From Azolla caroliniana (taxonomy: Eukaryota; Plantae; Polypodiophyta), in contig JBHGNT010000009.1 of the NCBI GenBank assembly GCA_043228905.1, positions 15,624,001-15,688,000 on the forward strand: a stretch of 64,000 bases of DNA, read 5' to 3'. The translations under genes and the position numbers were made by a program. The notes below the pieces were generated by a model that saw only the letters and a program-made list of their open reading frames with translations, was not told the DNA's origin and did not search any database. This document shows, piece after piece, positions 3,001-34,116 of this stretch; position 1 is the stretch's first letter, and every line of letters begins with the position of its first letter.

Positions 3001-3255
3001 GCTTAGGTATTCCAAACACACAGTAGATTAGCCGTAGCTATACACAGACTTTCAGAGAAGATAGAATTCTATTACGATACGCTTCTTTACATTCCAAAAT
3101 ACACCCTCCCTCTATTAGAGGTTTTTTTCCCTTTATATACGCAGGGTCTATTTAGCCGTTCACGCTTCTTGCGTGAACCGTTACATGCGTTATGATCTTA
3201 TATTATTTCTTACTCCTACGCTCTTGTCCATCGGTTACTATTCCAGCGGACAACA
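1..3255 (-). mobile_element. Degenerate Ty3/Gypsy LTR retrotransposon, 5' part (LTR, PBS, gag, protease); continues beyond the window start
   Basis: Minus-strand fragments with CCHC knuckles (CPICHSKAHTVDQC) and an aspartic-protease-like region (IDGGSGVNV...LLGRPWL), broken by frameshifts. PBS-like TGGCACGCCTGGTG at 2800-2813 lies next to a TG...CA segment at 2818-3255. Confidence 0.8.
2818..3255 (-). repeat. Putative 5' LTR of the Gypsy at the window start
   Basis: TGTTA...CAACA termini, adjacent PBS, abrupt switch to Copia gag at 3256. The partner LTR is outside the window. Confidence 0.6.
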
Positions 3256-18397: not shown

Positions 18398-18667
18398 ATA
18401 TGCATTATTTTATTGGAACAAATTTTATATAGTTGAAACCATCTAATGTATTGCATTTGCACCATATAACACACATGTAAAAGCATCCATTTAGTATAAG
18501 AGGGAAATGATTATTGTCATGGGGGGGGGGGGGGGGGGGGGGGGGGGGATGGCAATCAAAGAGACATATATTGTAAAGGGTTTTCTTTCTTTTGGCAAAA
18601 GAGATTTTTCTTGTAGCATTCTTTCTTCTTCCGCGTTTGAGGTTTAGCTGCGTAGGGTGTTTTGTTC

Positions 18668-18767
18668 NNNNNNNNNNNNNNNNNNNNNNNNNNNNNNNNN
18701 NNNNNNNNNNNNNNNNNNNNNNNNNNNNNNNNNNNNNNNNNNNNNNNNNNNNNNNNNNNNNNNNNNN
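18668..18767. other. Assembly gap (100 N)
   Basis: Run of N. Confidence 1.
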
Positions 18768-18789
18768 AGGGCATAATTAGAAAAAAAGC

Positions 18790-18825
18790 AACACGTTCGC
18801 GTTCACAAGTGGAAGGATTGCGCAT
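18790..18825 (+). repeat. Left terminal inverted repeat
   Basis: AACACGTTCGCGTTCACAAGTGGAAGGATTGCGCAT; reverse complement at 33547-33582 with 1 mismatch. Confidence 0.92.
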
Positions 18826-19822
18826 TCCACTTGTAGAATCTTCTTAAAACGAAGCAAATACACCCTCTCTACAAAAATTGGATGCACTAGTATCACATGT
18901 TCCTCAACTTGATTAGAATTTGCAAATATAAAAATACATGATAGATCTACGAGTGGAGATCATTAGAAATCATGCAAGTTTAGACATGTTGATAAGTTAA
19001 AGTAGGCATAATAAAGTTCAACTATGGCTCAATATGTCACTACTGTGCGACAAGGGAAACAGTAACTTAAAGACTTATATTAATTAGGTAAGTTTTACAA
19101 AAATATGAGGTGCACTTGTATCCATACTAATAAAATGAGATATAATTTATACTTTGACCCATACGTGCATGTATGTAATTGTGGAAAATGTAGGATAGTG
19201 CACATTAGGATAAGTGATTGGAATAACTAACTTATTAAAGTATTCAATACTTGTATTTAAAGTTGATCTAATCTATTCCTCAGTTTGTTCATGTGGGATC
19301 AAACCATATGTGTATATAATTGTGCACAATGTAAGGCAGTGAACTTTAGGATAATGTCGTGGAAATAACAAACCTATTAGGCTTTCATACCTGTATTTAA
19401 AATTGATCTACTCTATTGCTTAGGTGATTCACACAAGATCAAACTCCGAACGATAACGCAACTGGAACCATTATCAACACACTACACAATCTAAGCAGCA
19501 ATGGAATAGAAACATAATAGTTTTAACAATAGAAGACAAAGATCCATAATAACAACATGGACAGTCATGGCAACAATTATAGGGCCATGTTCTGTTAAGG
19601 TTAGCTTGGACCAAAATCAGCCTCCATTTAAACTAGTTCATGTTTCTCCATAAGTTTGGTAGTCAGCTATGCACGCGGTGAAACCAATATCAAGTATATA
19701 AAAATAAAATTGAAACATATGGAAGATTATAAAGAATAGAATCCACTAGGTAAAACCCAAAATTTGTATTAATAATGTGAAATCTTAACAAATCATCAGT
19801 GTCATATTCTTCATAGAGTCTA

Positions 19823-22800
19823 TTACATAGCAATCAATTCATCAACGTCATTTTCTTCATCATCTTGTGTAGAACTGTCTTCGGCTATACGTGCATTGGT
19901 TTCCCCTGTTAGCCGAGCCAACGAAATATCTTCTATAAGCTCATCATCAAGCTCTATTAGCTCCCCCGGTTCGCCGGCTAACAGAGGAATAGGCTCTCGT
20001 GAAGCAGGTTGAAACCTTTCTGTATTGGCGAGGTTCTTTGCACCGACCTCCTCATCCTGGTCTGGGCACTCCAACAAAGCCTTAATCTGCATATTAATAA
20101 ATATAACTTGGTCCTCGTCCTTCTCCAATGCAACTGTATTTCTAAACAGCTTCAATGCACATGCTGACGTAGTTCCTGTGATGTAAGTAACAAGAAGATT
20201 TAGTTGTCAAACGAAAAAAAAGTGATTGGTTATCTCAAGATCGTTACCCTAGTTCGAGGAATACCTGTGCCAGAAAAGAGATCTAATATCCAATCTCCTT
20301 TGACAGAAAACATCTCGATCAAGCGCATCATAAGTCGTTGAGGTTTTTGGTATGGGTTGACAAGTCCCCGTTCTGTCGTGGTGACATGTCGCAATTTCCG
20401 AGTCACTGCTGGATATACCAACAGATTTGAACCTCCCACTTCATTAGAATGCTCTTTGATTCTCAGTTTCTTAATTTCATCGAAGTAGCCAACCATTATG
20501 TATTCAATGGCATTAACGAACCGAAAAGTTGGCCCTCTATTTACATTGGTCTTGATCCTATAAAAAATAATTCATCGAGTTAAGAATAGATTCAACAACC
20601 TTAAGAAATGCAATATAGTGAAAGACACATATAAATAATCCTTACCATGCAAGGTTCTCGATGCCATGGCAACGAGATCTCAAAGCTTGAGCTACCGAGT
20701 ACCCTTGGTCCATACTATGAAAGACAACTATTCGCCACAAGGATGCGGTCGTTAGCTCAGCAAAATCCTTGACCATCTTCTCCAATTGTTTAAACCTAAA
20801 CGGTTCATCGTCGTATGATGACCCAGCCATTCGAAATCCGTAAGGAATATCCGCAATCATTAGTGTATATTCCTTCTTTGGCACCTTCTGGATCAAGTCG
20901 ATGACATCACCGCAAACCACATTGTAGTAAAGATCTCTCGTAATATCTTTTTTGTGGCTAAAATTTTTAAACGAGCCATCTTCCTCCATTTCGTACGCCT
21001 TGACTAAGCGACGATCCTTTTCTTTTCTGGCTCGCTCGAGATGTGCAAGGAAGGATGTAGGGAAATCGTGTATATCCTTAACTTCTCCTTGTTTCTTGCC
21101 TCGACACGGTTTCTAATAGAAGCAATAGGACATCAGGTATTATTATACAAGCTCTACATATGATGAAAGGGTAATGAAAAAACATGAATACTAACCCAAT
21201 CCTTGAATGCAATAAAATACTCTGATAACGCCTTATACGAAGACGTTAGAGGATAATCCTCAGTCACTTGTTCCCAAGTTATACATCCAAGTTGTTTCAT
21301 CATAACTTCTTGGATCCTCATGTACACCTTATGACTGTAAAATTAGAAATCAAGATTAGAACTTTGAATTACACCAGATAGACTACAATTTCAGTATTTG
21401 AAAGACTTACTTATTGAACTCAGTGACCATTTCTTCAAGGCTTAAATCTTTCGCCACAACCCTTGACAAAACCGACACAAGAAGCTGCTCGTCCTTAATA
21501 CCTTGCATCGCTCTCCATAGAGACAGCTTCATGTCATCTGCCGCTTCTTCAATTGTCAAGTCAATTTTCTTGGCGGCTTGTGACTTTAACTCTAGTTGAG
21601 GGTCAACCCTACATTTCTTTTGTTGTTGACCCTTTACCTCCTTATTCTCCCACATTGAGAAGATTTGATCTTGTAGGTCCCATACTTCTCCATCTCTAAA
21701 CGCCAATTGAAACCAAGACTCATACTTTCGAAGACCATCAGACCTAACATTATCATCTACCACAATGCCGACTTCATGCAGACATTGACGTCGAAGGCCT
21801 AGATGTAACTTCACACCAAACTTTTGTTTCACATCTAAATACTCGTGGTGGAAGAACCGTATACGCTCAATGGACGACATTTTCTGCCTATAGTCATTAT
21901 CATTATTATGGTCCCATGCCAACAGCTTAGCCTCTTCGGTTGTGAGCCCAACATAAATTTTGCACTCGGCATACTTGAAGAAGAAAGTGGTTGGATGTTC
22001 TCTCACAAGTTGCCGACGTGCCTCTGCTGAATGCGATCCACCAATGACAAAATAATTATATTGATAATGCTTTCTAATATCAAAATCTTCAATGGTTTCA
22101 CATTCTTCAGGATCTATCATAACAATAAAAGGCACCACAGTGGCATGAGGATTAATTTTCATTTTTTTCTTGAGATTTTGAACATGCATGCGGTGAGGCT
22201 CTCTAATCTCAAGTGGTCTTCGACCTGTTTTTTCATCAATAGGGGGCCGATGGATGTGTGTTATAGGCAAATTAAACACTTGCCCTTTCCTGACCAGCTT
22301 CCGTTGCATTAACTCTCTCCTTATTTTATTCTGATCGGATGACAAAACACCTGAGGCCAGCTCAACTCCTGGCGTCCCCTTATTATCCTCCTCTTCGTTT
22401 TCACTTGTTGAATCCGTATCCGACATTTTGGTTGTCTTCTTCTTTGCTGGTCTTGACTGGACTTTGGATACCTTTTTTGTGGCCTTCAATGGGGAGGGCA
22501 CTTCATCTCTTAGAGTTACATGGCCTTGTATATAAGGCCTCAAGGTAACAATAAGGTTTTGTGAGCTATCAAGTGCTTTTTTGAACACTTCTGGCCCACA
22601 AGATTCCTTTACTAAAAGGTCTTCTGAAAGGAACACTTTACGTACCCCCTTGGAGCACTCTATCATTACTAGTATGTTTGCCGAATCTGCATCTTCGTAG
22701 TCAAATCGTAGAATACGGCCATACATAAATGGGGTTTCCTTTCCAAGCTGCCCCTCACCCTTCTTCTTTGCTGTATACAATACGACTTTTTTCTTTGAGT

Positions 22801-23907
22801 CGACATATTGCATACACCATTCCTTGTCTGTTAGATCTCGGTCAGGAAGGTCTTCACCTCCAGTAGCGGCGATAAGTTTCTTTTGGCTAACATCACTATG
22901 TGGCTGAGATTTTGTCTCTTCGTTAAATAGAAGCTTTTTTCCTCTCTTTATGGTCTTAGGAGCTACCTTGGTCTGGGCTTCGATTGGAGAACCTTGTATG
23001 CGAAGCTTTATTTTCTTCACGGGTCGGTCCGACAGGTTCTCAAACGACCTATTTAAGAAAGTATATGCAAAAACATAAGTTAGGTAGTCACGTAGATTAA
23101 GGTTGTATATTATAATGAAGAACAGTTCCTAGGAGCAGTCCTATATTCAAAAATCTATTATAGGCAGGGCTATTCAACCTAGAAAATATATATCGTAATA
23201 AGTAAACAGGGTTATATATTCTTTTAAATAGTAGGTATGACTTATATAGATTCTAAACCTATATTGAAGAGAATTTGCTATCGTAAAGGCAATTTGTGGA
23301 TCATTTTCTACTATTTTAAGCTAAAGTAGGTCATAAAACACCTATAATTAGAGCATGTTTTGTTTTAAAAGTAAGGAATGTCAACATAAAAAAGACTGAT
23401 TTTGCCAGACAATTTGATATCTTTTCCACCCCATAATTATTTGTTACCCCAAAAACACAAATTTTCTCTCTCAAAGCCTTCTTATATACAGGAACTCGAT
23501 ACGCCGTATCGAGTTCGTGTTTAAAACCTACACTTTAAACAAGAACTCGATACGTCGTATCGAGTTCCTGTTTAAAGTTGGAATTTTAAACAGGAACTCG
23601 ATACGCCGTATCGAGTTCGTGTTTAAAGTGTAGGTTTCAAACAGGAACTCGATACGCCGTATCGAGTTCCTGTTTAATGTGTGGGTATTAAACAGGAACT
23701 CGATACGGCGTATTGAGTTCCTGTATAAAAAGCAAAAACAAATTATGAACTCGATACGCCGTATCGAGTTCATGTATAAAGTTTGTATTGTATACATGAA
23801 CTCGATACGACGTATCGAGTTCTTGAGAAACGAAACATATTTACAAAAATGTCCACAGTGTCAAAGGCCTACCTGGAGTCCTCGCGCACGATTCTCTTTG
23901 AAGACAT
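19823..23907 (-). CDS. Spliced 974-aa ParB/Srx-like domain + beta-class N6-adenine/N4-cytosine DNA methyltransferase fusion; exons 23907-23873, 23048-21411, 21334-21196, 21112-20646, 20557-20265, 20175-19823
   Basis: Five GT-AG introns join in frame (2925 nt, no internal stop). MTase motifs in beta order: GDVIDLI, IADIPYG (motif IV), W-x-K...EY, NPYQKP..L..RLI, ILDLFSGTGTT (motif I), VALEKD. ParB-like segment: IREP...HVQNLKKKM...YFVIGGSHSAEA...LLAWDHN. Confidence 0.88.
23492..23822. repeat. Seven 25-bp palindromes GAACTCGATACG-N-CGTATCGAGTTC at an exact 51-bp period, inside intron 1 of the MTase gene
   Basis: Copies start at 23492, 23543, 23594, 23645, 23696, 23747 and 23798. The 26-bp AT-rich spacers differ from one another. 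Confidence 0.97.
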
Positions 23908-24050
23908 CGTTGATCGTGTGGAAGTGGAGGCGGAGATCGCGCTTTCGTGCTTTGTGCTTTGTGTGCTTTGTGTGCTTTGTGTGCTCTCTACGTTCTGTGT
24001 GCTCTGTACGCTCTGTACGCTCTGGTGAGTGAAATATGACGAGGTCTTCC

Positions 24051-24058
24051 TATTTATA
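24051..24058 (-). promoter_or_regulatory. TATA box (TATAAATA) of the ParB-MTase gene
   Basis: About 150 bp upstream of the predicted ATG at 23907, followed by a simple-repeat 5' UTR. Confidence 0.6.
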
Positions 24059-25981
24059 GGGATTGAACACATTGGTTAAAGTAACCATAGTCACCTTAAC
24101 CAAGGTTGGTAACTTTGAGGATAGTTAGTTGGTAACCATAGTCACATTAACTAGAGTAACTTATGATTGTATTAATGATTACAAAGTCAAACTAACATAT
24201 TGATCAATCTTTTATAGTCATAACAACCTACAATGACTTCAAAGGTTATGAAGGAGACAATGATAGAGGTTCATGAATGTACCAATGATTGATTACTAAA
24301 AGCAACAAATTTTATGACTCTCAAATGCTATGTATTAAAGATGTTGGCATGAATTAACCAATGATTGATAAGTCTAATATTTAAAATGGTGAGCATTAAA
24401 GAACCAATGATTGAGACGTTCTATATCAAAATGGGTGCCATTAATTAGCCAATGATTTTAACATTAATCCAACATATTCATGGCTTGTTAATGATTAGTT
24501 TTATATTTTACTTGATTTAACTTCATATAGATCTAGTTTATATAATAATTGATATTTTAAGTACAATTACTTTATTAAAAATAATTTTTTGATGTATTGT
24601 ATTAATAGAATATTACATAATATAGACATTCTATTGATTTGGCTTTTGTTTAGAGAGAAGTTTATGTTTAGAGAGGAGTATATGTTTAGAGAGGAGCTTA
24701 TTAGTTTTTTTCCTTACCCTAAGCACATAACTTAGAGAGCCCTATCTAGACCTTAAGCCATGAGTGAAGATTCACCGTTCTCGATTGAAGAATATTGTTT
24801 GTCATCAGACCCATCGTTTTCTACTGAAGAGTATTGTTTGTCAACAGAGTCACCATATTCGATTGAAGAATATTGTCTGTCGACCGACTCACCATATTCT
24901 ATCGAAGAATATTGTCTGAGCTCATCTACAGGGAATGTAAATAATGACACATGTGAAGAGTTCTCTATTGAAGAATACGATATTAATAAAGATACCGAGA
25001 ATGAAGGAAGTGCCCAGGAAACATTGAATAACATTGGCGATGGTCACAACAGAGAATTAGACTGTAACAAGGTTACACCAACCTCTATGCAGGAAGAGAA
25101 ATCTGGGAGCCCTATGCATATTAGAAGAATCCCACGAAGAATTCGTCTGGCTAGATTTAGCTTGGTGACATCAGATAAACAGATTGGATTTGATGTCAAC
25201 AAAATATGTTGTGCCCGTGGTTGTATGCCTATGATTGGAAAATCAAAGTTGCGAGAATTAAGGCGATACTATTTTTCGATGACCAGTGATGAGCAAGACA
25301 CTTACCTCGGGTCACATATGCAACTAGTATCTGACAAATGTACGGGGATCAAAGTATCATTCGAGTATTATATCTTCCATGCGCAACAGATATGTAGAGT
25401 TGCATTCAAAATTGTGTTATGTGTTAGTAACATGCGGCTACATAGAGTACAACAACGTCTACTTAGCGGGGATCAGATGCTCAATTGTAAAGAGGTTCCA
25501 AGTATGAAAGGTGCAATTGGAAGACTAGCTATTGGCTGGATGAAAACTTACTTTCAGTTAAATTGTGAAGTAATGCCCACTACAGGTAGGATGCATCTTT
25601 TTGATAATTATACACGTCGGGAAGTTTATGATGTCTATCGATCTGATATGCTGGGCTCACGTAATAAGTCTATCACCTATAGCCAATTCACAAGATTATG
25701 GAGAGCTCGGTTTTCAAATGTTATTATTCCTCGTAAAGTACGTATGGGGTATTGCTCCATTTGTGCAAATCTTAAAAGTTTGGCTAAAGGTGCAAAGACA
25801 TCAATGGAAAAGGATACGAGTAAGAAGTTACTACAAGAGCATCGTGAGGCACAATCCTTAGAACGAAGGAAGGCGATGCATCTTAGAGAGAAGTGTTTGA
25901 AGAGGCCTGTCAGGAACTCTATTAAGGCAGAGAAGGAATTAGTACTATGAGAGGTGTCGAACTTTGAGAGAAGGAATGAGT

Positions 25982-26049
<68 letters not shown>

Positions 26050-26331
26050 TGATGCGAAAGATATATGTATTATATGACGGAAGATATACAACAGTAGTTA
26101 GAAGGCTTAAGACTGGCGTTGAACCGATTTGGTTCGAACTAATGCCTTGCGCCTCCTTTTATAGTGTCTTCAGGAATACTCCTGAAGTTTCTAGAATGTT
26201 CCAGAGAAATCTGGAATATACATCAATTTCCTAATAAAACCTAAATGAAAATAATATCCTTCAAATTACAACTCATAACCTAATGGTAAAGTCTCGACCC
26301 GTGTAACAAAAGGTTATGGGTTCGAGTCTAG

Positions 26332-29300
26332 TTATGACACTATCCCCCCTTCAAAACGACGAGTTTCACGAGTCGTTTTGGATTGAGGACCCGGTTTCTC
26401 GGGATATCGTCGATGGAAGTCTTCTAGAAGAGCACGAGCATTGGTCACATTCTCGATCGGTTCCCAAGTACGCTCGCTGGGACTATATCCTAGCCAATCG
26501 ACTAGATAGTAGAGCTTGTTGCGAACAATCTTGGAATCGAGGATGGCAGCGACCTCATACTCAGGTCCATCTTCGAGCTCGATAGGAGGTGGAGGTTGTA
26601 TAGTACGTCCTGGGATAGTGCTCTCGTGATAGGGTTCGAGGAGAGAACTATGAAACACCGGGTGTATCCGAAGTTGCGGAGGTAGCTCGAGACGAAAAGC
26701 GACATCATTAATCTTCCCGATAATACGGAAAGGACCTAATCGTCGATAATCCAACTTCTCACATGGGCGAGTAGTCTTGATGTGTCGTCGTAGCAGCCAC
26801 ACCCGATCTCCAATGTTAAAACTGGATGGAAGTCGATGACGATCTGCGTAGTCCTTGTGTGATTGTTGAGCTTGCTGGAGTTGAGTAGATAAATCCGCTT
26901 GTATCTTGTGTAACCGCTCCAAACGATCCTCCGCGTAAGGATTTGTGGACACTTCTGGGGTTTCAAGGACACACCACCGGGGATGATATCCCGTATAAGC
27001 GTAGAATGGCGTGACTTTAGTCGATGCGTGGATAGCGTTATTATAGGCAAATTCGGCGAACGGAAGAATATCTGCCCAGTCATTCTGATGATAGTTGAGA
27101 AAGCACCGCAGATACTGCTCCAGTGTTTGATTTGTTCGTTCGGCTTGACCGTCGGTTTGTGGGTGGTAGCCGGAGGAGAGGTTACAAGTGACCTTCAGCA
27201 TTTTAAAAAGGTGCTTCCAGAATTTTGACACAAACTGGGGTCCACGATCGCTGATGATATTATCAGGGAGTCCATGATGCCGACATACTTCCCGCATGAC
27301 AATTTCGGCGGTGTCTTCACTAGATATTTCTTTAGTACATGGTAAGAAATGAGCCATCTTCGTATATCGATCCACCACTGTGAGAATCGCACTGAATCCC
27401 TTAGAGACTGGAAGATCTGTAATGAAGTCAAGAGCAATGGATTGCCATGGCTTGCTTGGAATTGGTAATGGTTCTAATAAACCATATGGATGATGTCTTG
27501 GCATTTTCGCTCTGCAGCATGTATCGCAAGTCCGAACAAAATCTTCGACAAATTGTCGCATACGGGGCCACCAGAATGATCGTTGTACTAAATCTAATGT
27601 TTTAGTACTACCAAAATGTCCTGCTGTATATGTGTCATGGCAGTTTTGTACTACTCGAAGGCGGCAAGAACCATTAGGAACATACAAAAGTTCTTTAAAG
27701 AAGAGTAATCCATCACAGTATTTGAATTGCCGATAATCCGTACCTGGTGATTGTGATTGTGAACATGACGCTCGAGAGGGGTCAATTTGTGCTAGTATAG
27801 CTTGGGCGAAAGCGTCAGTCTTCAAGTCCTCACGTATAGTATTGGTAATGTCGGAATCCACGGGCATGTCAAAGATCTGTGCTGCTTGCAGTCGTGCTGG
27901 ACCCAAGATTACTTGCTTCTGGTTATCGAAAGCTGGCTCACCGGGACGTGGTGTTAGATACGAACGCCGTGATAATGCATCTGCCTTCCCTTGGTGCTTC
28001 CCCGGACGATATGTAATTTTGAAGTCGAAGCGTGTGAGGAAATGGGCCCACCGAGCTTGACGTCGATTCAGTACACGAGCATCTTGAAAGTAGGCAAGGT
28101 TCTTGTGGTCACTGAATACAGTGACCTGATGAGGAGATCCCTCCAGGAAATGCCTCCATTGCATAAAAGAATCAACTATTGCTAATAGCTCTTTATCATG
28201 AATTTCGTAGTTGATTTCGGCGGCGTCAAACTTACGGGAGTGGAAAGCCACAGGATGTAGCTTCTCGTCGTTACCCTGTTGTGACAGAATGCTCCCCAAT
28301 GCGAAATCCGATGCATCAGCTTCGATAATGAATGGTTTTTCCGGATCCACATGACCTAAAATTGGAGCTGATGTAAACGCCTTCTTAAGACTCTCGAAAG
28401 CCATGTCCGTCTCTTTAGACCAAATGAATGATTGTCCCTTCCTGGTGAGCTGTGTGAGAGGCAGCACAATTTTTGAGTAATTTTGTATGAACTTCCGGTA
28501 GAAATTTGCAAAGCCTAGGAAGCATTGCACATCCCGCACCGAACGCGGAGTGTGCCATTCTATCACCGTTTTGACCTTGGCTGGGTCCATAGATATGCCT
28601 TCTGAGGAGATGACATAGCCGAGAAACTCCACTTGGTTGCACCCGAAACTACATTTCTCTAACTTTGCATACAGACCATGTTCTCGAAGTCGTTTTAGTA
28701 CTAATAGTACATGAGAATCATGTTCTTCTTGGGTCTTTGAATAAACCAGTAGATCATCCAAATAGATGATCAAAAAATCATCCAAGAGGTCTCGAAATAT
28801 ATCATTCGCCATGTGCTGGAAGACTGCCGGCGCATTAGTGAGTCCGAACGGCATGACCGTATACTCGAAGTGCCCATATCTGGTGCGAAACGCGGTCTTC
28901 CATTCATCTCCTGGTCGGATCCGTACGAGGTTATAGGCTCCTCGTAAGTCGATCTTCGTGAAGAACCTGGCACCGTTGATCCGTTCTAAAAGACTTGAGA
29001 TAAGGGGAAGAGCATACCTATTTCTTACTGTGACCTTATTCAAGCCACGGTAATCTACAACGAGTCGAAGCGAGCCATCTTTTTTCTTGACGAAGAAAAT
29101 GGGTGCGCCGGCTGGAGATTTCGAATGCCGAATGAAACCGTTCTCCAAATTCTCCTCTATATAGGCTCGAAGGACTTCTAGCTCGGTTGGTGACAAATTG
29201 TAGATCGGCCCCCATGGCGGCTCTTTTCCCGGTTGTAAGTCGATGGCGCAGTCGTACGGCCGATGATGAGGAAGTGTGTTGGCTTGTACTTTATCGAACA

Positions 29301-29889
29301 CATCAGCATACTGACGATACTTCTCGGGAAGTTGAACGGTGGACTCCTCTTTGGTGGTGCTGGAGGGTTGTACTGATATTGCAAAGAGAAACATTTCCTC
29401 CTTGCGCCCTTCCTCACGCAACTGACGTAGCGAAATGGTTGCAACCTTCTGGGTAGATCCTTGGGTTTGTCGCAACCGGATTTCCCTTGTCCTCCAATCT
29501 ATGTCTGGGTCATGTAACTCGAACCATGGTAATCCTAAAACTATGGGATGTTCTGGAATACTAATAATATTAAATGATACTACACATGTTAAGTTATCTA
29601 GGACAATATTAACGGGTTCCGACTCTTCTATGATATTACCAGAAGCAATGGGACGACCATCAATGACTACTACTGAGGCTGGACATGGGAGCTTTCTTAG
29701 AGATATCTGATGAGCTCGGGCAAAATTCCTATCCATGAAGCAAGAATTAGCTCCGGAATCTAGAAGGGCTAAGGTATGTACTGGAGGGGTACTTTTAGTA
29801 CTAACTGCTACTTGGACTACGAACACATCACTAACTTGCTTAGAGGGAATGGAACCACTAATGGGCTGCACAGATCTAGGGCTGTCCAA
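26332..29889 (-). CDS. pol: Pol (PR-RT-RNase H-IN-chromodomain), probably expressed by -1 frameshift from gag
   Basis: ALLDSGA, YLDD, EADASD, HHCC + DDE integrase, GPF, chromodomain EYEVAAILDS...YLVDWLGY...TWEP. Confidence 0.96.
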   Translation of the reverse strand: MDSPRSVQPISGSIPSKQVSDVFVVQVAVSTKSTPPVHTLALLDSGANSCFMDRNFARAHQISLRKLPCPASVVVIDGRPIASGNIIEESEPVNIVLDNLTCVVSFNIISIPEHPIVLGLPWFELHDPDIDWRTREIRLRQTQGSTQKVATISLRQLREEGRKEEMFLFAISVQPSSTTKEESTVQLPEKYRQYADVFDKVQANTLPHHRPYDCAIDLQPGKEPPWGPIYNLSPTELEVLRAYIEENLENGFIRHSKSPAGAPIFFVKKKDGSLRLVVDYRGLNKVTVRNRYALPLISSLLERINGARFFTKIDLRGAYNLVRIRPGDEWKTAFRTRYGHFEYTVMPFGLTNAPAVFQHMANDIFRDLLDDFLIIYLDDLLVYSKTQEEHDSHVLLVLKRLREHGLYAKLEKCSFGCNQVEFLGYVISSEGISMDPAKVKTVIEWHTPRSVRDVQCFLGFANFYRKFIQNYSKIVLPLTQLTRKGQSFIWSKETDMAFESLKKAFTSAPILGHVDPEKPFIIEADASDFALGSILSQQGNDEKLHPVAFHSRKFDAAEINYEIHDKELLAIVDSFMQWRHFLEGSPHQVTVFSDHKNLAYFQDARVLNRRQARWAHFLTRFDFKITYRPGKHQGKADALSRRSYLTPRPGEPAFDNQKQVILGPARLQAAQIFDMPVDSDITNTIREDLKTDAFAQAILAQIDPSRASCSQSQSPGTDYRQFKYCDGLLFFKELLYVPNGSCRLRVVQNCHDTYTAGHFGSTKTLDLVQRSFWWPRMRQFVEDFVRTCDTCCRAKMPRHHPYGLLEPLPIPSKPWQSIALDFITDLPVSKGFSAILTVVDRYTKMAHFLPCTKEISSEDTAEIVMREVCRHHGLPDNIISDRGPQFVSKFWKHLFKMLKVTCNLSSGYHPQTDGQAERTNQTLEQYLRCFLNYHQNDWADILPFAEFAYNNAIHASTKVTPFYAYTGYHPRWCVLETPEVSTNPYAEDRLERLHKIQADLSTQLQQAQQSHKDYADRHRLPSSFNIGDRVWLLRRHIKTTRPCEKLDYRRLGPFRIIGKINDVAFRLELPPQLRIHPVFHSSLLEPYHESTIPGRTIQPPPPIELEDGPEYEVAAILDSKIVRNKLYYLVDWLGYSPSERTWEPIENVTNARALLEDFHRRYPEKPGPQSKTTRETRRFEGGIVS

Positions 29890-29915
29890 CCAAACGGCTC
29901 CTATTTTGGCTGGAC

Positions 29916-31085
29916 TTAGTCGTTTAACTCTTCTTCTAATTGGCTAAGGACATCAAATTTGTTTGCGAGATTCGGACTATTAGTACTATTAGGACTATTA
30001 TGACTATGAGGATTATCAGAGATTCCTACTGACATAGACTCGGGTTTAGTATAGTCAGAACTAACAATGACTTGGTTTACCTGCCTTCTTGGTCTATGGG
30101 GACAGTTTATCGCGATATGCCCTGGTCCACCGCAATAAAGGCATAATCGGTTTGTTCGGCGTCGTTGCTTTTCCTCCTCCGATAGCGGCCCACGACGACG
30201 TGTAGTGTCAATTTCCATTGGAGTTGGAGTACTTACTGGAGGCGCATTATGTGACTCCCTTTGAAAAGGTTTCGCTACCATTGAGGCATAGGTAGGCTCG
30301 GATCTTGCCCTCGGCATCTGAAATTGTCGTTCCGAACGTCGCTCGAAGAGGCGGTTGTCACATCTGACCGCTCGACTGATTGCTTCTGTTAATGATTTTG
30401 GCTCTTCAGGGAAAGTCAAGAGTAAATCCGTGACATCGTTGCGTAGACCATAGCGGAACTGCTCCATCAATGCTTGATCATCCCAGGGGATATCGGCGGC
30501 GAGTAGGCGGAAATCTGCAGCATATGCGGAGGCTGGACGGTCACCTTGGCGTAATCGCCGGATTTTGTTGATTGCAGTCCTTATGCTGTCAGTATCTCCA
30601 AAACATGCTTTAAACTCACTTATGAATTCTTCAAAATTATTTAGTACTGGAGATTCCTTTTCTAGTAGCGGTGCGAACCATGCTAATGCTGAGCCAGTTA
30701 ACAACGTGCCTACTAAACCCACTCGTGATGCATCGGTGGGATATCGGGACGGATGCATTTGAATAACTAACCGTACCTGGTTAAGAAACCCTCTAAACTG
30801 CGATCGCGTTCCATCGAACTTCGTGGGAAGGCCAATCTTGGGTTCTTTATGAATCCCTTGTGCTCCGTGCCCTTGTTGTTGCATTGCTACGATGGTTGCT
30901 TCGAGTTGTTGCACGCGTAACGCAAGTTCCCCATGCTGTTGTTGCGTTTGCTGCTTTTCTAAGGAAATTTGCTGAAGATCCCCCAACAAGCGTTGATTTT
31001 CTTGTTCCAAAGCATGAAACTTCTCTTTCAAGCATTGAAATTCCGAGAAAACGGATTGATACTCTTCAGCGCTAACGGTGGCCAT
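29916..31085 (-). CDS. gag: Gag (389 aa), retrotransposon gag domain + CCHC knuckle
   Basis: KFDGTRSQFRGFLNQ, LRQGDRPASAYAADF, PTPMEID, CLYCGGPGHIAINC. Confidence 0.95.
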   Translation of the reverse strand: MATVSAEEYQSVFSEFQCLKEKFHALEQENQRLLGDLQQISLEKQQTQQQHGELALRVQQLEATIVAMQQQGHGAQGIHKEPKIGLPTKFDGTRSQFRGFLNQVRLVIQMHPSRYPTDASRVGLVGTLLTGSALAWFAPLLEKESPVLNNFEEFISEFKACFGDTDSIRTAINKIRRLRQGDRPASAYAADFRLLAADIPWDDQALMEQFRYGLRNDVTDLLLTFPEEPKSLTEAISRAVRCDNRLFERRSERQFQMPRARSEPTYASMVAKPFQRESHNAPPVSTPTPMEIDTTRRRGPLSEEEKQRRRTNRLCLYCGGPGHIAINCPHRPRRQVNQVIVSSDYTKPESMSVGISDNPHSHNSPNSTNSPNLANKFDVLSQLEEELND

Positions 31086-31250
31086 GGGATGAAGGAAAAG
31101 GGAAATAAGAGACTAGTAGGAAAGGAGAGAGACAGAAGGAAGAGGGAGACTAGTAGGGGGGGAAATCGGTTCAAACTGTCAGGAACTCTATTAAGGCAGA
31201 GAAGGAATTAGTACTATGAGAGGTGTCGAACTTTGAGAGAAGGAATGAGT

Positions 31251-31296
<46 letters not shown>

Positions 31297-33546
31297 TGAT
31301 GCGAAAGATATATGTATTATATGACGGAAGATATACAACAGTAGTTAGAAGGCTTAAGACTGGCGTTGAACCGATTTGGTTCGAACTAATGCCTTGCGCC
31401 TCCTTTTATAGTGTCTTCAGGAATACTCCTGAAGTTTCTAGAATGTTCCAGAGAAATCTGGAATATACATCAATTTCCTAATAAAACCTAAATGAAAATA
31501 ATATCCTTCAAATTACAACTCATAACCTAATGGTAAAGTCTCGACCCGTGTAACAAAAGGTTATGGGTTCGAGTCTAGTTATGACAAGGCCCGAACAATA
31601 CATGTGCTTAATGATAGATGGCATGGACCAGAAGAAGACATGCTTGCCGCATATGCGGAGGCTCCCCAAAGATGTCAATGATGAGTGCCTTGTTCAAATG
31701 CACTTGGTGGGATGCTTGGCTTATAATAGGTCTGTTTGACCTCACGTCTTCATTACTTACCCCAATGTTCACAATGACCCTAACCTAACAGTTACAGTGA
31801 TTCACCGAGTTTTGATGTCTTGGGGACAACCTTTCCCCCCTGTTCTATACATTCAATTGGACAATACTGCTAGAGAGAACAAAAATTCAACTGTATTTGG
31901 CTATCTAAGTATGTTGGTCAACCTAGAATTGTTTAGGAAAGTGAAAGTCAATTTCCTTTTGGTTGGCCACACACATGACCATATAGATCAGATGTTTAGC
32001 ACATTCTCCAGACAGTTGTCTCGGCATGATGCTTTCACTTTACCTAAACTATTTGATGTCATTTGTGATGCTTATACACCACGCCCAAAAGTGTTACACT
32101 TGAAGGAGGTATATGACTTTAAGAGATATATATTAGATGGGGGTGGTGGGAATGTTAAAGTGCTTGCTCAATTAAACAATATAAGTTTCAATCACATTTT
32201 TTTGATAAAGAAAAATGGAATAAGTGGTTCTACACTTTTGTATGCTAAACAATATTCATCTTCTACAACATGGGAACCTGAAGGTGGTTGCCAGTTATTA
32301 CTTTGTATGCCGAGTACAATTGTCCATGGAGCTAAGCAAATGCCAATTGAGAAGAAAGGACAGTTGCAGAGCGACTTGGTATCAGAACAAAAATGGTCAT
32401 GGGTCCAAGCCTTAGAAGAAAAAAGAAAGCATATTGAGGCCGCCAAGAAATATGCCGCACAACAAGACACGTCATGGTGGGATGTATTTTATAGTGATCA
32501 GAAAGAAATTATAGACAATTGTGTATCTGTTGATAATTGGAATTTGGAAACGCCATTCACATGGTCGCTGCAACATGATTGCGTAAATAGAAGTCCGGAG
32601 CAACTAGTAAATGCGATTAATGACAGCTTGGTCCATCCACAACAAAGAGACATTTATGTGGGACCAAGGATGACGAAAGAAGCCGAAGCTAGATGGCAAG
32701 GAAATTTGCAAGAGCTCACCGCGGGGATGTTGATTGCAAAGCCGGTTGATGAGAACTCACATGGCCACCAATTTTGGGTTGGTAAAATTCTAGAAGTGCT
32801 AATGCATGAAATAGAAAACACGATCAAGTCTATAAATGTTCATTGGTACAACACTAGAAGTGCAAATGCTTTTACAAGTAAGTATACATTGGAGATGATT
32901 GAATGCCAAACAAGAAGGGGAGGTAGGAAGAGGAAGCGAAACATTCGTAACACCTCGACCCTTGATATCTCTGATGTGGATATCATCGTGTACGACTTCA
33001 CACTTACAAAAGCCGGACGATTAAGGAAGTCAACAATAGATATAATAAAAGAAAAATTACCAGGTCTACAAGGTGGCTCGAGTCAAAGGCAAACGAGATC
33101 TACTACATATAATCTAGAGTCAAACCATTTGGTTTATGACGAAGATAATGCACTGATTGGTACATCCGAGGATGATGATGAGGAATCGTCATTGTATATT
33201 AGTTATAGTAGTGATTCTCCGTAAAGGAGTGATCATGAATGTATATTTGGCTATTAAGTGTAACTACATTCCGCTTGTAACAAATCGAGTAATATAAAAT
33301 CATGTGTTTTGAATTCTTATGATTTCTAAAAAATCGTTTCTTATAAAATAACATTGGTTGTAAAGTTTGTGATATAAATTGAGAATGTATGTTTTTGAAA
33401 TTCGTCTTTTTTTAGTTACTTCTAAATCACGAAAATAGTGGATTTTTAACCTTTTTCATAGTATGTTTGAACTTGTATGATACTGGTATCAATGTGTTTT
33501 GTAAAATCATTGAAAAACCCCTAAAATTTCCCTTATCCTTCCATTT

Positions 33547-33582
33547 ATGCGCGATCCTTCCACTTGTGAACGCGAACGTGTT
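33547..33582 (-). repeat. Right terminal inverted repeat
   Basis: ATGCGCGATCCTTCCACTTGTGAACGCGAACGTGTT followed by AAGC. Confidence 0.92.
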
Positions 33583-34116
33583 AAGCATGGATTGCCAAGA
33601 CTCTCTCATCACTATATAAGGATGGGGAGCATGATGTAATAAGGGTGTGGAATATTTGGAAATTGGATATATTTCTAAAAAACACCAATTAATAAACTAT
33701 ATTCGTGAGATTCATAAAATAAACTATACTCGTGGGATTCACGAGGTTTCTATTTCTCTCTATTTCAATCCAAATTCATATTCTTATCTTAATATTGATT
33801 AATCTAATAAAATACATTATACTCATGGGATTCCCGAGGTTTTTTATATCTCTTTCTTATAATCTATTCGTATTCATAACTAGATTAGCCTCAAAATCTT
33901 CCTCCTTGTCCAAAACCCCAGCGGTTCCCACCCGACTCACACAACGATCTGGCGCCGAAAGTCACGACATAGTTGATGAACCCGACGTGAAGATGGGTGG
34001 CAAGGAGATGGAGAATCAACAAGAGGCGATGAATACGATGATGATGATGTTCCAGCGGATGCTACAAGAACAACGAGCGATGTCGGAGATCACAGTGGTA
34101 GTAAAGCGGTTCGTAC

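Follow-up and report, generated by a model that had tools for sequence, protein, structure and literature searches.

The 64,000-nucleotide stretch of the Azolla caroliniana genome analyzed here (contig JBHGNT010000009.1, positions 15,624,001 to 15,688,000; hereafter the window) very probably holds a copy, recently inserted and no longer autonomous, of a family of Sola1-type cut-and-paste transposons that extends across the streptophytes, with members in Chara, a liverwort, ferns, and Ginkgo. The family combines an intronless transposase gene, an opposite-strand, intron-containing gene for a protein with a PH/SANTA-like domain, a ParB-like domain, and a beta-class amino-methyltransferase domain (the accessory gene), and intronic arrays of lineage-specific palindromes with 16- to 17-bp cores. 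We propose that the accessory protein would recognize these palindromes and methylate the DNA of its own element. We put the probability of this explanation overall, family identity and self-marking taken together, at roughly 0.6; the ParB-guided methylation mechanism by itself we rate a little short of an even chance.

The ends of the element can be read directly from the sequence. A 36-bp terminal inverted repeat (TIR) that begins with AACACG lies at positions 18790 to 18825 on the forward strand, its 36-nt partner lies at 33547 to 33582 on the reverse strand, and the two are complementary at 35 of 36 positions; immediately outside them are target site duplications (TSDs) with the sequence AAGC, at 18786 to 18789 and 33583 to 33586. 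The 29-nt core of the TIR occurs at only these two sites in the window, with none expected from shuffled sequences, and the AAGC duplication is seen in a single copy, with a probability of 1/256 that a 4-bp match arises by chance. Excision of a nested 5,684-bp long terminal repeat (LTR) retrotransposon from the 14,793 bp between the outer ends leaves an element of 9,109 bp. Homologous TIRs are found at two other loci of the family (loci outside the window carry L numbers below), at 288 to 324 and 8818 to 8838 of L002 and at approximately 2655 to 2702 and 10930 to 10963 of L006. The 36-bp TIRs, the AAGC TSD, and the 9,109-bp reconstruction given in the initial annotation of this stretch were all reproduced, and its view of the element as a bounded TIR transposon gains support from the repeats themselves, from the TSD, and from the TIRs shared with other copies; the check that it proposed, whether these TIRs bound other copies, came out in its favor at L002 and L006. 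Additional copies of the TIR motif are present at both ends, in an internal hairpin-like arrangement (ACAAGTGGAA...TTCCACTTGT) on the left (18790 to 18850) and as a direct repeat of the motif TGGAAGGAT on the right (33530 to 33582), and these may be transposase-binding sites. An assembly gap of 100 N (18668 to 18767) leaves just 22 readable bases to the left of the element, with a 28-nt run of G farther out (18521 to 18548); at the right boundary (33582/33583), no clear loose ends were seen in the reads among the matches listed.

The transposase is a single intronless open reading frame (ORF) on the forward strand that the nested retrotransposon has split into an N-terminal part (24760 to 25907) and a C-terminal part (31592 to 33224), which are in frame with each other once the LTR element is removed. 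The N-terminal part has 61% identity to the intact 908-amino-acid protein P0040; at its very N terminus are 3.5 tandem 39-bp coding repeats (24784 to 24918; peptide SIEEYCLS-SDSP-like). The C-terminal part carries the catalytic core (DGMDQ, QLDNTARENKN, VGHTHDHIDQ) and matches PF25273 (DUF7869) with an E value of 3e-42. Compared by eye, the catalytic blocks DGMDQ / QLDNTARENKN / VGHTHDHIDQMFS resemble MDGANQ / QVDNTVAENKN / VGHTHIQIDQIFS of Sola1-1_Ec32, an Ectocarpus element with a 4-bp TSD and AACCG termini whose transposase sequence is printed in supplement 2 of PMC12477816 and was classed by the authors of that study through its best blastp match to Repbase Sola1-1_PPa. Assignment to Sola1 is further supported by the 4-bp TSD (AAGC on both sides), by the AAC...GTT termini, and by TIRs that both bound the element and are common to other copies (L002 and L006). 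Pfam names the core DUF7869, a designation of which no mention was found in the literature searched. Sola transposases are reportedly of the DDD type. In addition to the LTR split, the transposase in the window has a premature TGA at 31737 to 31739; since most public contigs of the family have C at position 31737, this stop is a private CGA-to-TGA change. The copy in the window cannot transpose by itself and is a dead example of a living family.

The accessory gene lies on the reverse strand and comprises six exons with 974 codons, all of whose junctions are GT-AG and in frame; this splicing model is based on canonical splice sites and on conservation across species. Translation begins in a 35-nt mini-exon (23873 to 23907; ATG at 23907, MSSKRIVREDS-), which is followed by an 824-nt intron 1 (23049 to 23872) that contains the palindrome array. 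The coding mini-exon with its donor (CCAG/GTAGGCC) and the intron 1 acceptor (TTAAATAG/G) are kept in L006 and L007. Loss of the start codon, which had been considered because the window reads CTG where two sister copies read ATG, was ruled out by the conserved 35-nt ATG mini-exon and its splice sites. The large exon (21411 to 23048) encodes the N-terminal PH/SANTA-like beta domain, an acidic linker, the ParB N-domain (VIGGSHSAEARRQL), and a helix-turn-helix region, as judged from an AlphaFold2 model, Foldseek and VIA structural comparisons, and 34 close homologs, and a short linker exon (21196 to 21334), whose two junctions agree with those of the annotated Ceratopteris protein P0017, joins the ParB and methyltransferase halves. 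Three further exons encode the methyltransferase: one with catalytic motif IV, which aligns as A-D-I-P-Y-G-F (20646 to 21112), one with NPYQKPQRL and DLFSGTG, the S-adenosylmethionine-binding motif I, identified by the PF01555 match and the alignment (20265 to 20557), and a last exon with the end of motif I (GTTSACA), an acidic tail, and a TAA stop at 19823 to 19825 (19823 to 20175), which is placed by its GT-AG junction and frame and is kept in L001, L002, L004, L006, and L010. We analyzed the exons singly and used the natural full-length Ginkgo homolog (P0147) where a contiguous protein was needed. Upstream of the accessory ATG are a TATA-like box, TATAAATAGG, at a distance of about 130 nt and, directly adjacent, a 9-bp microsatellite-like repeat (23953 to 24024; GCACACAAA in the direction of the gene), at the equivalent position of which L006 and L007 have (CAG)n-type repeats. 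Both of the divergent genes that had been annotated at first are present; the description "intact" fits the spliced ParB-methyltransferase gene, with its six exons, GT-AG junctions, and open frame, but not the transposase, with its LTR split and its TGA. The placement of the array inside intron 1 likewise stands, given the conserved mini-exon and splice sites.

The array consists of seven units with an exact 51-bp period (23485 to 23825), as originally annotated, and each unit holds a palindrome of 25 to 39 bp with the core TCGATAC-N3-GTATCGA. Six of the seven units have the perfect 25-bp palindrome GAACTCGATACGnCGTATCGAGTTC and the seventh has a single mismatch, with none expected by chance; the symmetry reaches about 39 bp, and the 12-bp spacers are variable. 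L002, L006, and L007 have arrays of this same core, and L001, L004, and L010 have the symmetric variant TCGATGC-N3-GCATCGA, in which both half-sites are changed. Spacings between palindrome centers in the window, L001, L002, L006, L007, and L010 are 31, 41, 51, 63, 73, 83/84, and 103 bp, approximate multiples of 10.4 bp, and a spacing near whole helical turns holds even in the irregular array of L002. Because the spacings are near whole helical turns, the palindromes would lie on one face of the DNA helix. Fern copies have no palindrome in the TIRs or subterminal regions and confine them to the introns of the accessory gene, and Ceratopteris and Riccia have a second array, in the intron that separates the ParB half from the methyltransferase half. 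In the liverwort Riccia sorocarpa (L008), there are 22 copies of TGTATGCGCGCATACA, a different 16-bp palindrome, which between positions 3200 and 13600 of that locus are also found in the transposase introns, between the genes, and in the ParB/methyltransferase intron. Two further loci offer related observations: at L005 (8189 to 8667), an AT-rich palindrome array with units around TATGTTATAACATA lies between transposase remnants and the ParB gene, a region of low complexity where the call is less certain, and in Chara (L009, 281 to 374) a 32-bp unit with the palindrome ACCGATTACGTAATCGGT occurs about three times, 9.6 kb upstream of the ParB-methyltransferase gene. The accessory protein probably binds the palindrome array.

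The ParB-like region is recognizable through its predicted structure. Its AlphaFold model has a predicted local distance difference test (pLDDT) score of 79, and the best Foldseek matches are to Noc, ParB, KorB, PadC, and sulfiredoxin, with an E value of 1e-5 and a probability of 1.0. The N-domain aligns with Caulobacter crescentus ParB at a VIA Z score of 11.2 (root mean square deviation of 2.1 Å over 98 residues) and with Myxococcus xanthus ParB at 11.5, compared with about 8 for sulfiredoxin, and for the C-terminal part, the match to the DNA-binding domain of the Spo0J-parS complex has a Z score of 5.5 (97 residues) and that to 6s6h one of 3.8. On this evidence, which comes from modeled structure alone, a ParB N-terminal fold is present, in agreement with the initial annotation. 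At the position of the CTP-binding box, all ferns have V-I-G-G-S-H-S-A-E-A and Chara has G-G-G-H-S/Y, akin to the GGxH of sulfiredoxin and ParB-like nucleases. A homodimer model of the ParB-like part reached an ipSAE of 0.57, against 0.20 for the best control, with contact agreement between runs of at least 58% and a partner pLDDT of at least 72, a pass that may reflect the model's memory of ParB dimers; the ipSAE mark itself was reached by 21 of 30 same-chain-pair structures and by 0 of 23 single-chain structures. Ahead of the ParB-like region, approximately at residues 60 to 170 of the large exon, is a PH-like beta-sandwich modeled with pLDDT above 90. Foldseek gave no match for this domain; in structural comparison, the SANTA domain found in M18BP1, a centromere protein, came out best, though weakly (VIA Z score of 6.3 over 93 residues), followed by ordinary PH/PTB domains at about 4.5. 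A role in chromatin contact would fit the weak SANTA match.

The methyltransferase half can be recognized by sequence. PF01555 (N6_N4_Mtase) matches the methyltransferase exon with an E value of 5e-8 and 33.6 bits, above the cut-off of 26.7, and matches the full-length Ginkgo homolog with 65.7 bits. Motif IV (DIPY, in the exon at 20646 to 21112) precedes motif I (FSGTG-TTS, across the junction of the exons at 20265 to 20557 and 19823 to 20175), which is the permuted order of the beta class; together with the score above the cut-off, this confirms the class to which the domain had first been assigned. D-x-P-x-G is invariant from ferns to Chara in the alignment, where motif IV reads D-I-P-Y in ferns, D-F-P-Y in Chara, and D-I-P-H in Ginkgo, L003, and L005, and conservation from Chara through to the ferns is also seen for NPYQKP and FSG[ST]G. 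Single methyltransferase exons gave marginal matches to Protein Data Bank (PDB) sequences; for the Ginkgo homolog P0147, the nearest solved enzymes were the N6-adenine (N6A) methyltransferases RsrI, CcrM, and MboIIA (E of ~2e-7), with N4-cytosine (N4C) enzymes at E values of >0.09. The enzyme looks adenine-N6-type, a specificity that is favored because motif IV leads with D and because the nearest solved enzymes are RsrI, CcrM, and MboIIA. The S-P-P-Y (TSPPY) motif IV of N4-methylcytosine (4mC) writers of the N4CMT/DN4MT1 type was not found, with D-I-P-Y in its place, and the parallel to those enzymes that was drawn in the initial annotation is accordingly weak.

The gene pair and its arrays recur well beyond the window. 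L002, L004, and L006/L007 are contigs of different ENA assemblies from other samples, and all of them have the head-to-head pair of transposase and ParB-methyltransferase genes with all exons. On chromosome 18 of Ceratopteris richardii (L010) there is an intact 870-amino-acid transposase, all of the accessory exons, and 27 palindromes in two introns, and Riccia sorocarpa (L008; CM100795.1) has the same head-to-head pair, with a second DUF7869 gene 5 kb further on. The accessory gene lies on the strand opposite the transposase in L002, L004, L006, L008, and L010 as well, and it is found with the same exon structure at at least seven loci of other samples and species. L005, from JGI metagenome 3300072920, represents a distant lineage with about 41% protein identity. 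Beyond the 34 close homologs of the ParB exon, a profile search recovered at least 734 relatives, of which Ginkgo has full-length ParB+PF01555 proteins and Chara has many; among the matches listed for a profile search with full-length proteins were only Chara paralogs, and at the Chara braunii locus (L009; BFEA01000077.1) no transposase was found within 10 kb. Short contigs of the family number in the thousands in four public DNA runs, which carry two organism labels between them. The initial annotation had also asked whether the TIRs, both genes, and the array recur together; these parts do form a conserved module, with methyltransferase and array kept in other copies (L002, L004, L006, and L010). 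Nonsynonymous divergence (pN) is 0.03 to 0.30, compared with synonymous divergence (pS) of 0.7 to 0.9, across the ParB, methyltransferase, and transposase exons, with synonymous sites saturated; judged from these sequence comparisons, both genes are under strong purifying selection.

We propose a mechanism in which the ParB-like part would bind the palindromes as a dimer, at sites on one face of the helix, and this binding would concentrate the fused methyltransferase on the DNA of the element itself. The enzyme would then write N6-methyladenine (6mA), or less likely 4mC, in and around the element, and the mark would tune the element's expression or transposition or would interfere with silencing by the host. 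What is inferred here is that the protein binds the array, that the enzyme is active, which base it modifies, and what the mark does. Dam adenine methylation inside IS10 and Tn5 ties transposase expression and end activity to replication, and by analogy it can serve as a working model for a self-written 6mA mark, with the difference that there the methylase belongs to the host whereas the fern element would encode its own.

A number of observations weigh against this proposal. For the ParB-like domain, Pfam gave no hit at E values of <10, ParBc (PF02195) included, and neither phmmer nor a 27-sequence profile found a ParB match among PDB sequences. The GERRxR (GxxR) CTP-binding box is absent from it, with GGSHS there instead, and because it is without the GERRxR arginines, the domain may not be a canonical ParB clamp. 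DIPH replaces DIPY in Ginkgo, L003, and L005. The palindromes are intronic, so action at the RNA level is possible, and in Riccia the TGTATGCGCGCATACA copies occur throughout the element, some of them close to its ends, a distribution that would suit binding by the transposase too. Expression evidence was not found: among the listed runs with the gene, none is recorded as RNA. As for the mobile unit itself, the window copy is unable to transpose on its own, TIRs were not found for the Ceratopteris locus L010, and L002 and L006 have no matching TSDs, which probably reflects the chimeric flanks of repeat assemblies.

The array could instead be a cis-regulatory or RNA-level element, through which the protein would repress its own promoter and that of the divergent transposase in the manner of KorB or Noc, or which would form pre-mRNA hairpins that affect splicing or small RNAs, with the methyltransferase acting elsewhere. 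Several features fit this possibility: the array lies ~50 to 420 nt downstream of the ATG exon, in intron 1, and is hence transcribed; Ceratopteris and Riccia have their second array in the ParB/methyltransferase intron; and one of the structural matches is KorB, which represses transcription and belongs to the ParB family. However, a symmetric core of 16 to 17 bp with variable flanks and spacers and helical-turn spacing is typical of dimeric DNA-binding sites and unlike processed hairpins, and regulation alone leaves the covalent fusion to a conserved, selected methyltransferase unexplained; we consider it unlikely. It is less probable again that the palindromes are internal or subterminal transposition enhancers bound by the transposase, with the ParB-methyltransferase modifying the host genome or other DNA in trans. 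In many DNA transposons the transposase binds subterminal repeats, and the Riccia palindromes do occur near both element ends and within the transposase gene region, but those of ferns are absent from the TIRs and subterminal regions and occur only in accessory-gene introns, and the TIRs bear a different repeated motif, TGGAAGGAT.

Similarly improbable is that the methyltransferase is not an active DNA adenine methylase at all, whether a pseudo-enzyme that only binds or an enzyme that acts on RNA or on cytosine N4. Its motif IV is atypical (D-I-P-Y, and D-I-P-H in some lineages), its similarity to solved enzymes is low, with ~26% identity to phage enzymes, and RNA is the substrate of several eukaryotic enzymes that descend from bacterial amino-methyltransferases (PMC4738411). 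Yet D-x-P-x-G, NPYQKP, and FSG[ST]G have been kept from Chara to ferns under strong purifying selection, the domain is fused to a ParB-like DNA-binding fold, and the nearest solved relatives are DNA N6A enzymes. That a single copy captured a host or bacterial gene once, or that the gene reflects bacterial contamination or an assembly artefact, might be suspected from the mainly prokaryotic distribution of beta-class methyltransferases and ParB domains and from the assembly gap 22 bp from the left end, but the accessory gene has five GT-AG introns, lies between plant-type TIRs, and is highly repeated in the four public DNA runs. One-off capture is excluded because the module recurs in other samples and species, and recurrence with the same exon structure at at least seven other loci refutes contamination and artefact as well, which leaves this explanation a negligible share of the probability.

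The architecture and the self-marking hypothesis both have precedents. Pfam architectures that combine ParBc with N6_N4_Mtase occur in phages and prophages, and more than 1,000 phage records hold a homolog of the methyltransferase half, at ~26% identity. The ParB-methyltransferase fusions and ParB-terminase loci of phages and prophages share with the fern gene the same two-domain logic and the same beta-class family (PMC4738411), but they are prokaryotic and intronless, have canonical ParBc motifs, and are without a transposase or a PH/SANTA-like N-terminal domain. The nearest counterpart is the brown algal element Sola1-1_Ec32, a Sola1 transposon of Ectocarpus with a ParB-like and N4C/N6A methyltransferase gene on the opposite strand; the 2025 study that describes it puts forward the idea that proteins of this type bind the transposon that encodes them and modify it epigenetically (PMC12477816). 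Like the fern element, it has a 4-bp TSD, AAC termini, an opposite-strand ParB-methyltransferase gene inside its TIRs, and, by eye, the same catalytic blocks, but it is 21.5 kb long with 282-bp TIRs, compared with 9.1 kb and 36-bp TIRs, and PMC12477816 mentions no palindrome array of the sort that the fern element has. The likeness of the two accessory proteins follows the published description, and the 1,104-amino-acid Ectocarpus protein was not among the matches listed in our profile searches. Plavaka (CACTA-related) transposons of the red alga Bostrychia encode PAG3 (ParB plus 2-oxoglutarate oxygenase) and PAG2 (N6A methylase plus SET), and tandem inverted-repeat arrays adjoin the ParB-oxygenase gene, for which binding and modification of self-DNA have been proposed (bioRxiv 10.1101/2025.02.11.637652); these elements belong to another superfamily, their ParB domain is fused to an oxygenase, and the methylase is separate and fused to SET.

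More distant parallels are the bdelloid N4CMT and Marchantia DN4MT1, which, like the fern gene, are bacterial-type amino-methyltransferases in eukaryotic nuclei (PMC8885841; bioRxiv 10.1101/2021.02.12.428880); these are host genes of the S-P-P-Y type (TSPPY in DN4MT1) that write 4mC, whereas the fern gene is of the D-I-P-Y type, transposon-borne, and fused to ParB. Retrotransposons of dinoflagellates and charophytes that carry a DNA methyltransferase (DNMT) are likewise mobile elements with an enzyme of their own, but the parts of PMC5890265 consulted describe these as C5 cytosine enzymes and describe no dedicated binding-site array. The suggestion in the initial annotation that no described family unites all three parts was overstated, given the Ectocarpus Sola1 element and the Bostrychia arrays that precede it, although an array goes unmentioned for Sola1-1_Ec32. 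A ParB-methyltransferase Sola1 element and the self-marking hypothesis are already known from Ectocarpus; what is new is the land-plant range, the intronic, helically phased arrays, and the symmetric divergence of the palindromes between lineages. No report of such elements in land plants was found in the literature searched, a search that left much of the subscription literature and Repbase outside its reach.

The remaining features of the window are foreign to the Sola1-like element. The nested insertion (25908 to 31586, reverse strand) is a Ty3/chromovirus LTR retrotransposon with gag, protease, reverse transcriptase, RNase H, integrase, and a chromodomain, flanked by the TSD AGGCC at 25903 to 25907 and 31587 to 31591; its 1,185-amino-acid pol ORF and 389-amino-acid gag ORF are apparently intact. 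In an alignment, its LTRs differ solely in the length of a (GA)n tract (34 versus 23 repeats), and because they are otherwise identical, the insertion is taken to be very recent. Copia and gypsy elements densely fill the rest of the window.

The broadest interpretation of these findings, which we advance tentatively, is that land plants and Chara host an active Sola1 lineage that would write its own mark other than 5-methylcytosine, probably 6mA, by targeting a fused methyltransferase to helically phased, lineage-specific palindromes through a co-evolving ParB-like domain. This would amount to a eukaryotic form of ParB/parS-style self-marking that may counter or redirect silencing or time transposition. 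If the enzyme is active, the nuclear DNA of land plants, in which the existence of such marks is disputed, would have a defined source of adenine (or N4-cytosine) methylation that is directed to particular sequences. Ceratopteris richardii is a tractable model fern for this question, with a copy that holds an intact transposase and 27 palindromes, and the comparison of element with flank and of intact with dead copies offers a built-in test of self-marking. The symmetric change of the palindrome between lineages supplies natural specificity variants for a compact DNA-targeting module, and the distribution of the family indicates that the design of a ParB-linked enzyme plus an array, as found in transposons of brown and red algae, goes far back in the green lineage and is widely distributed there.

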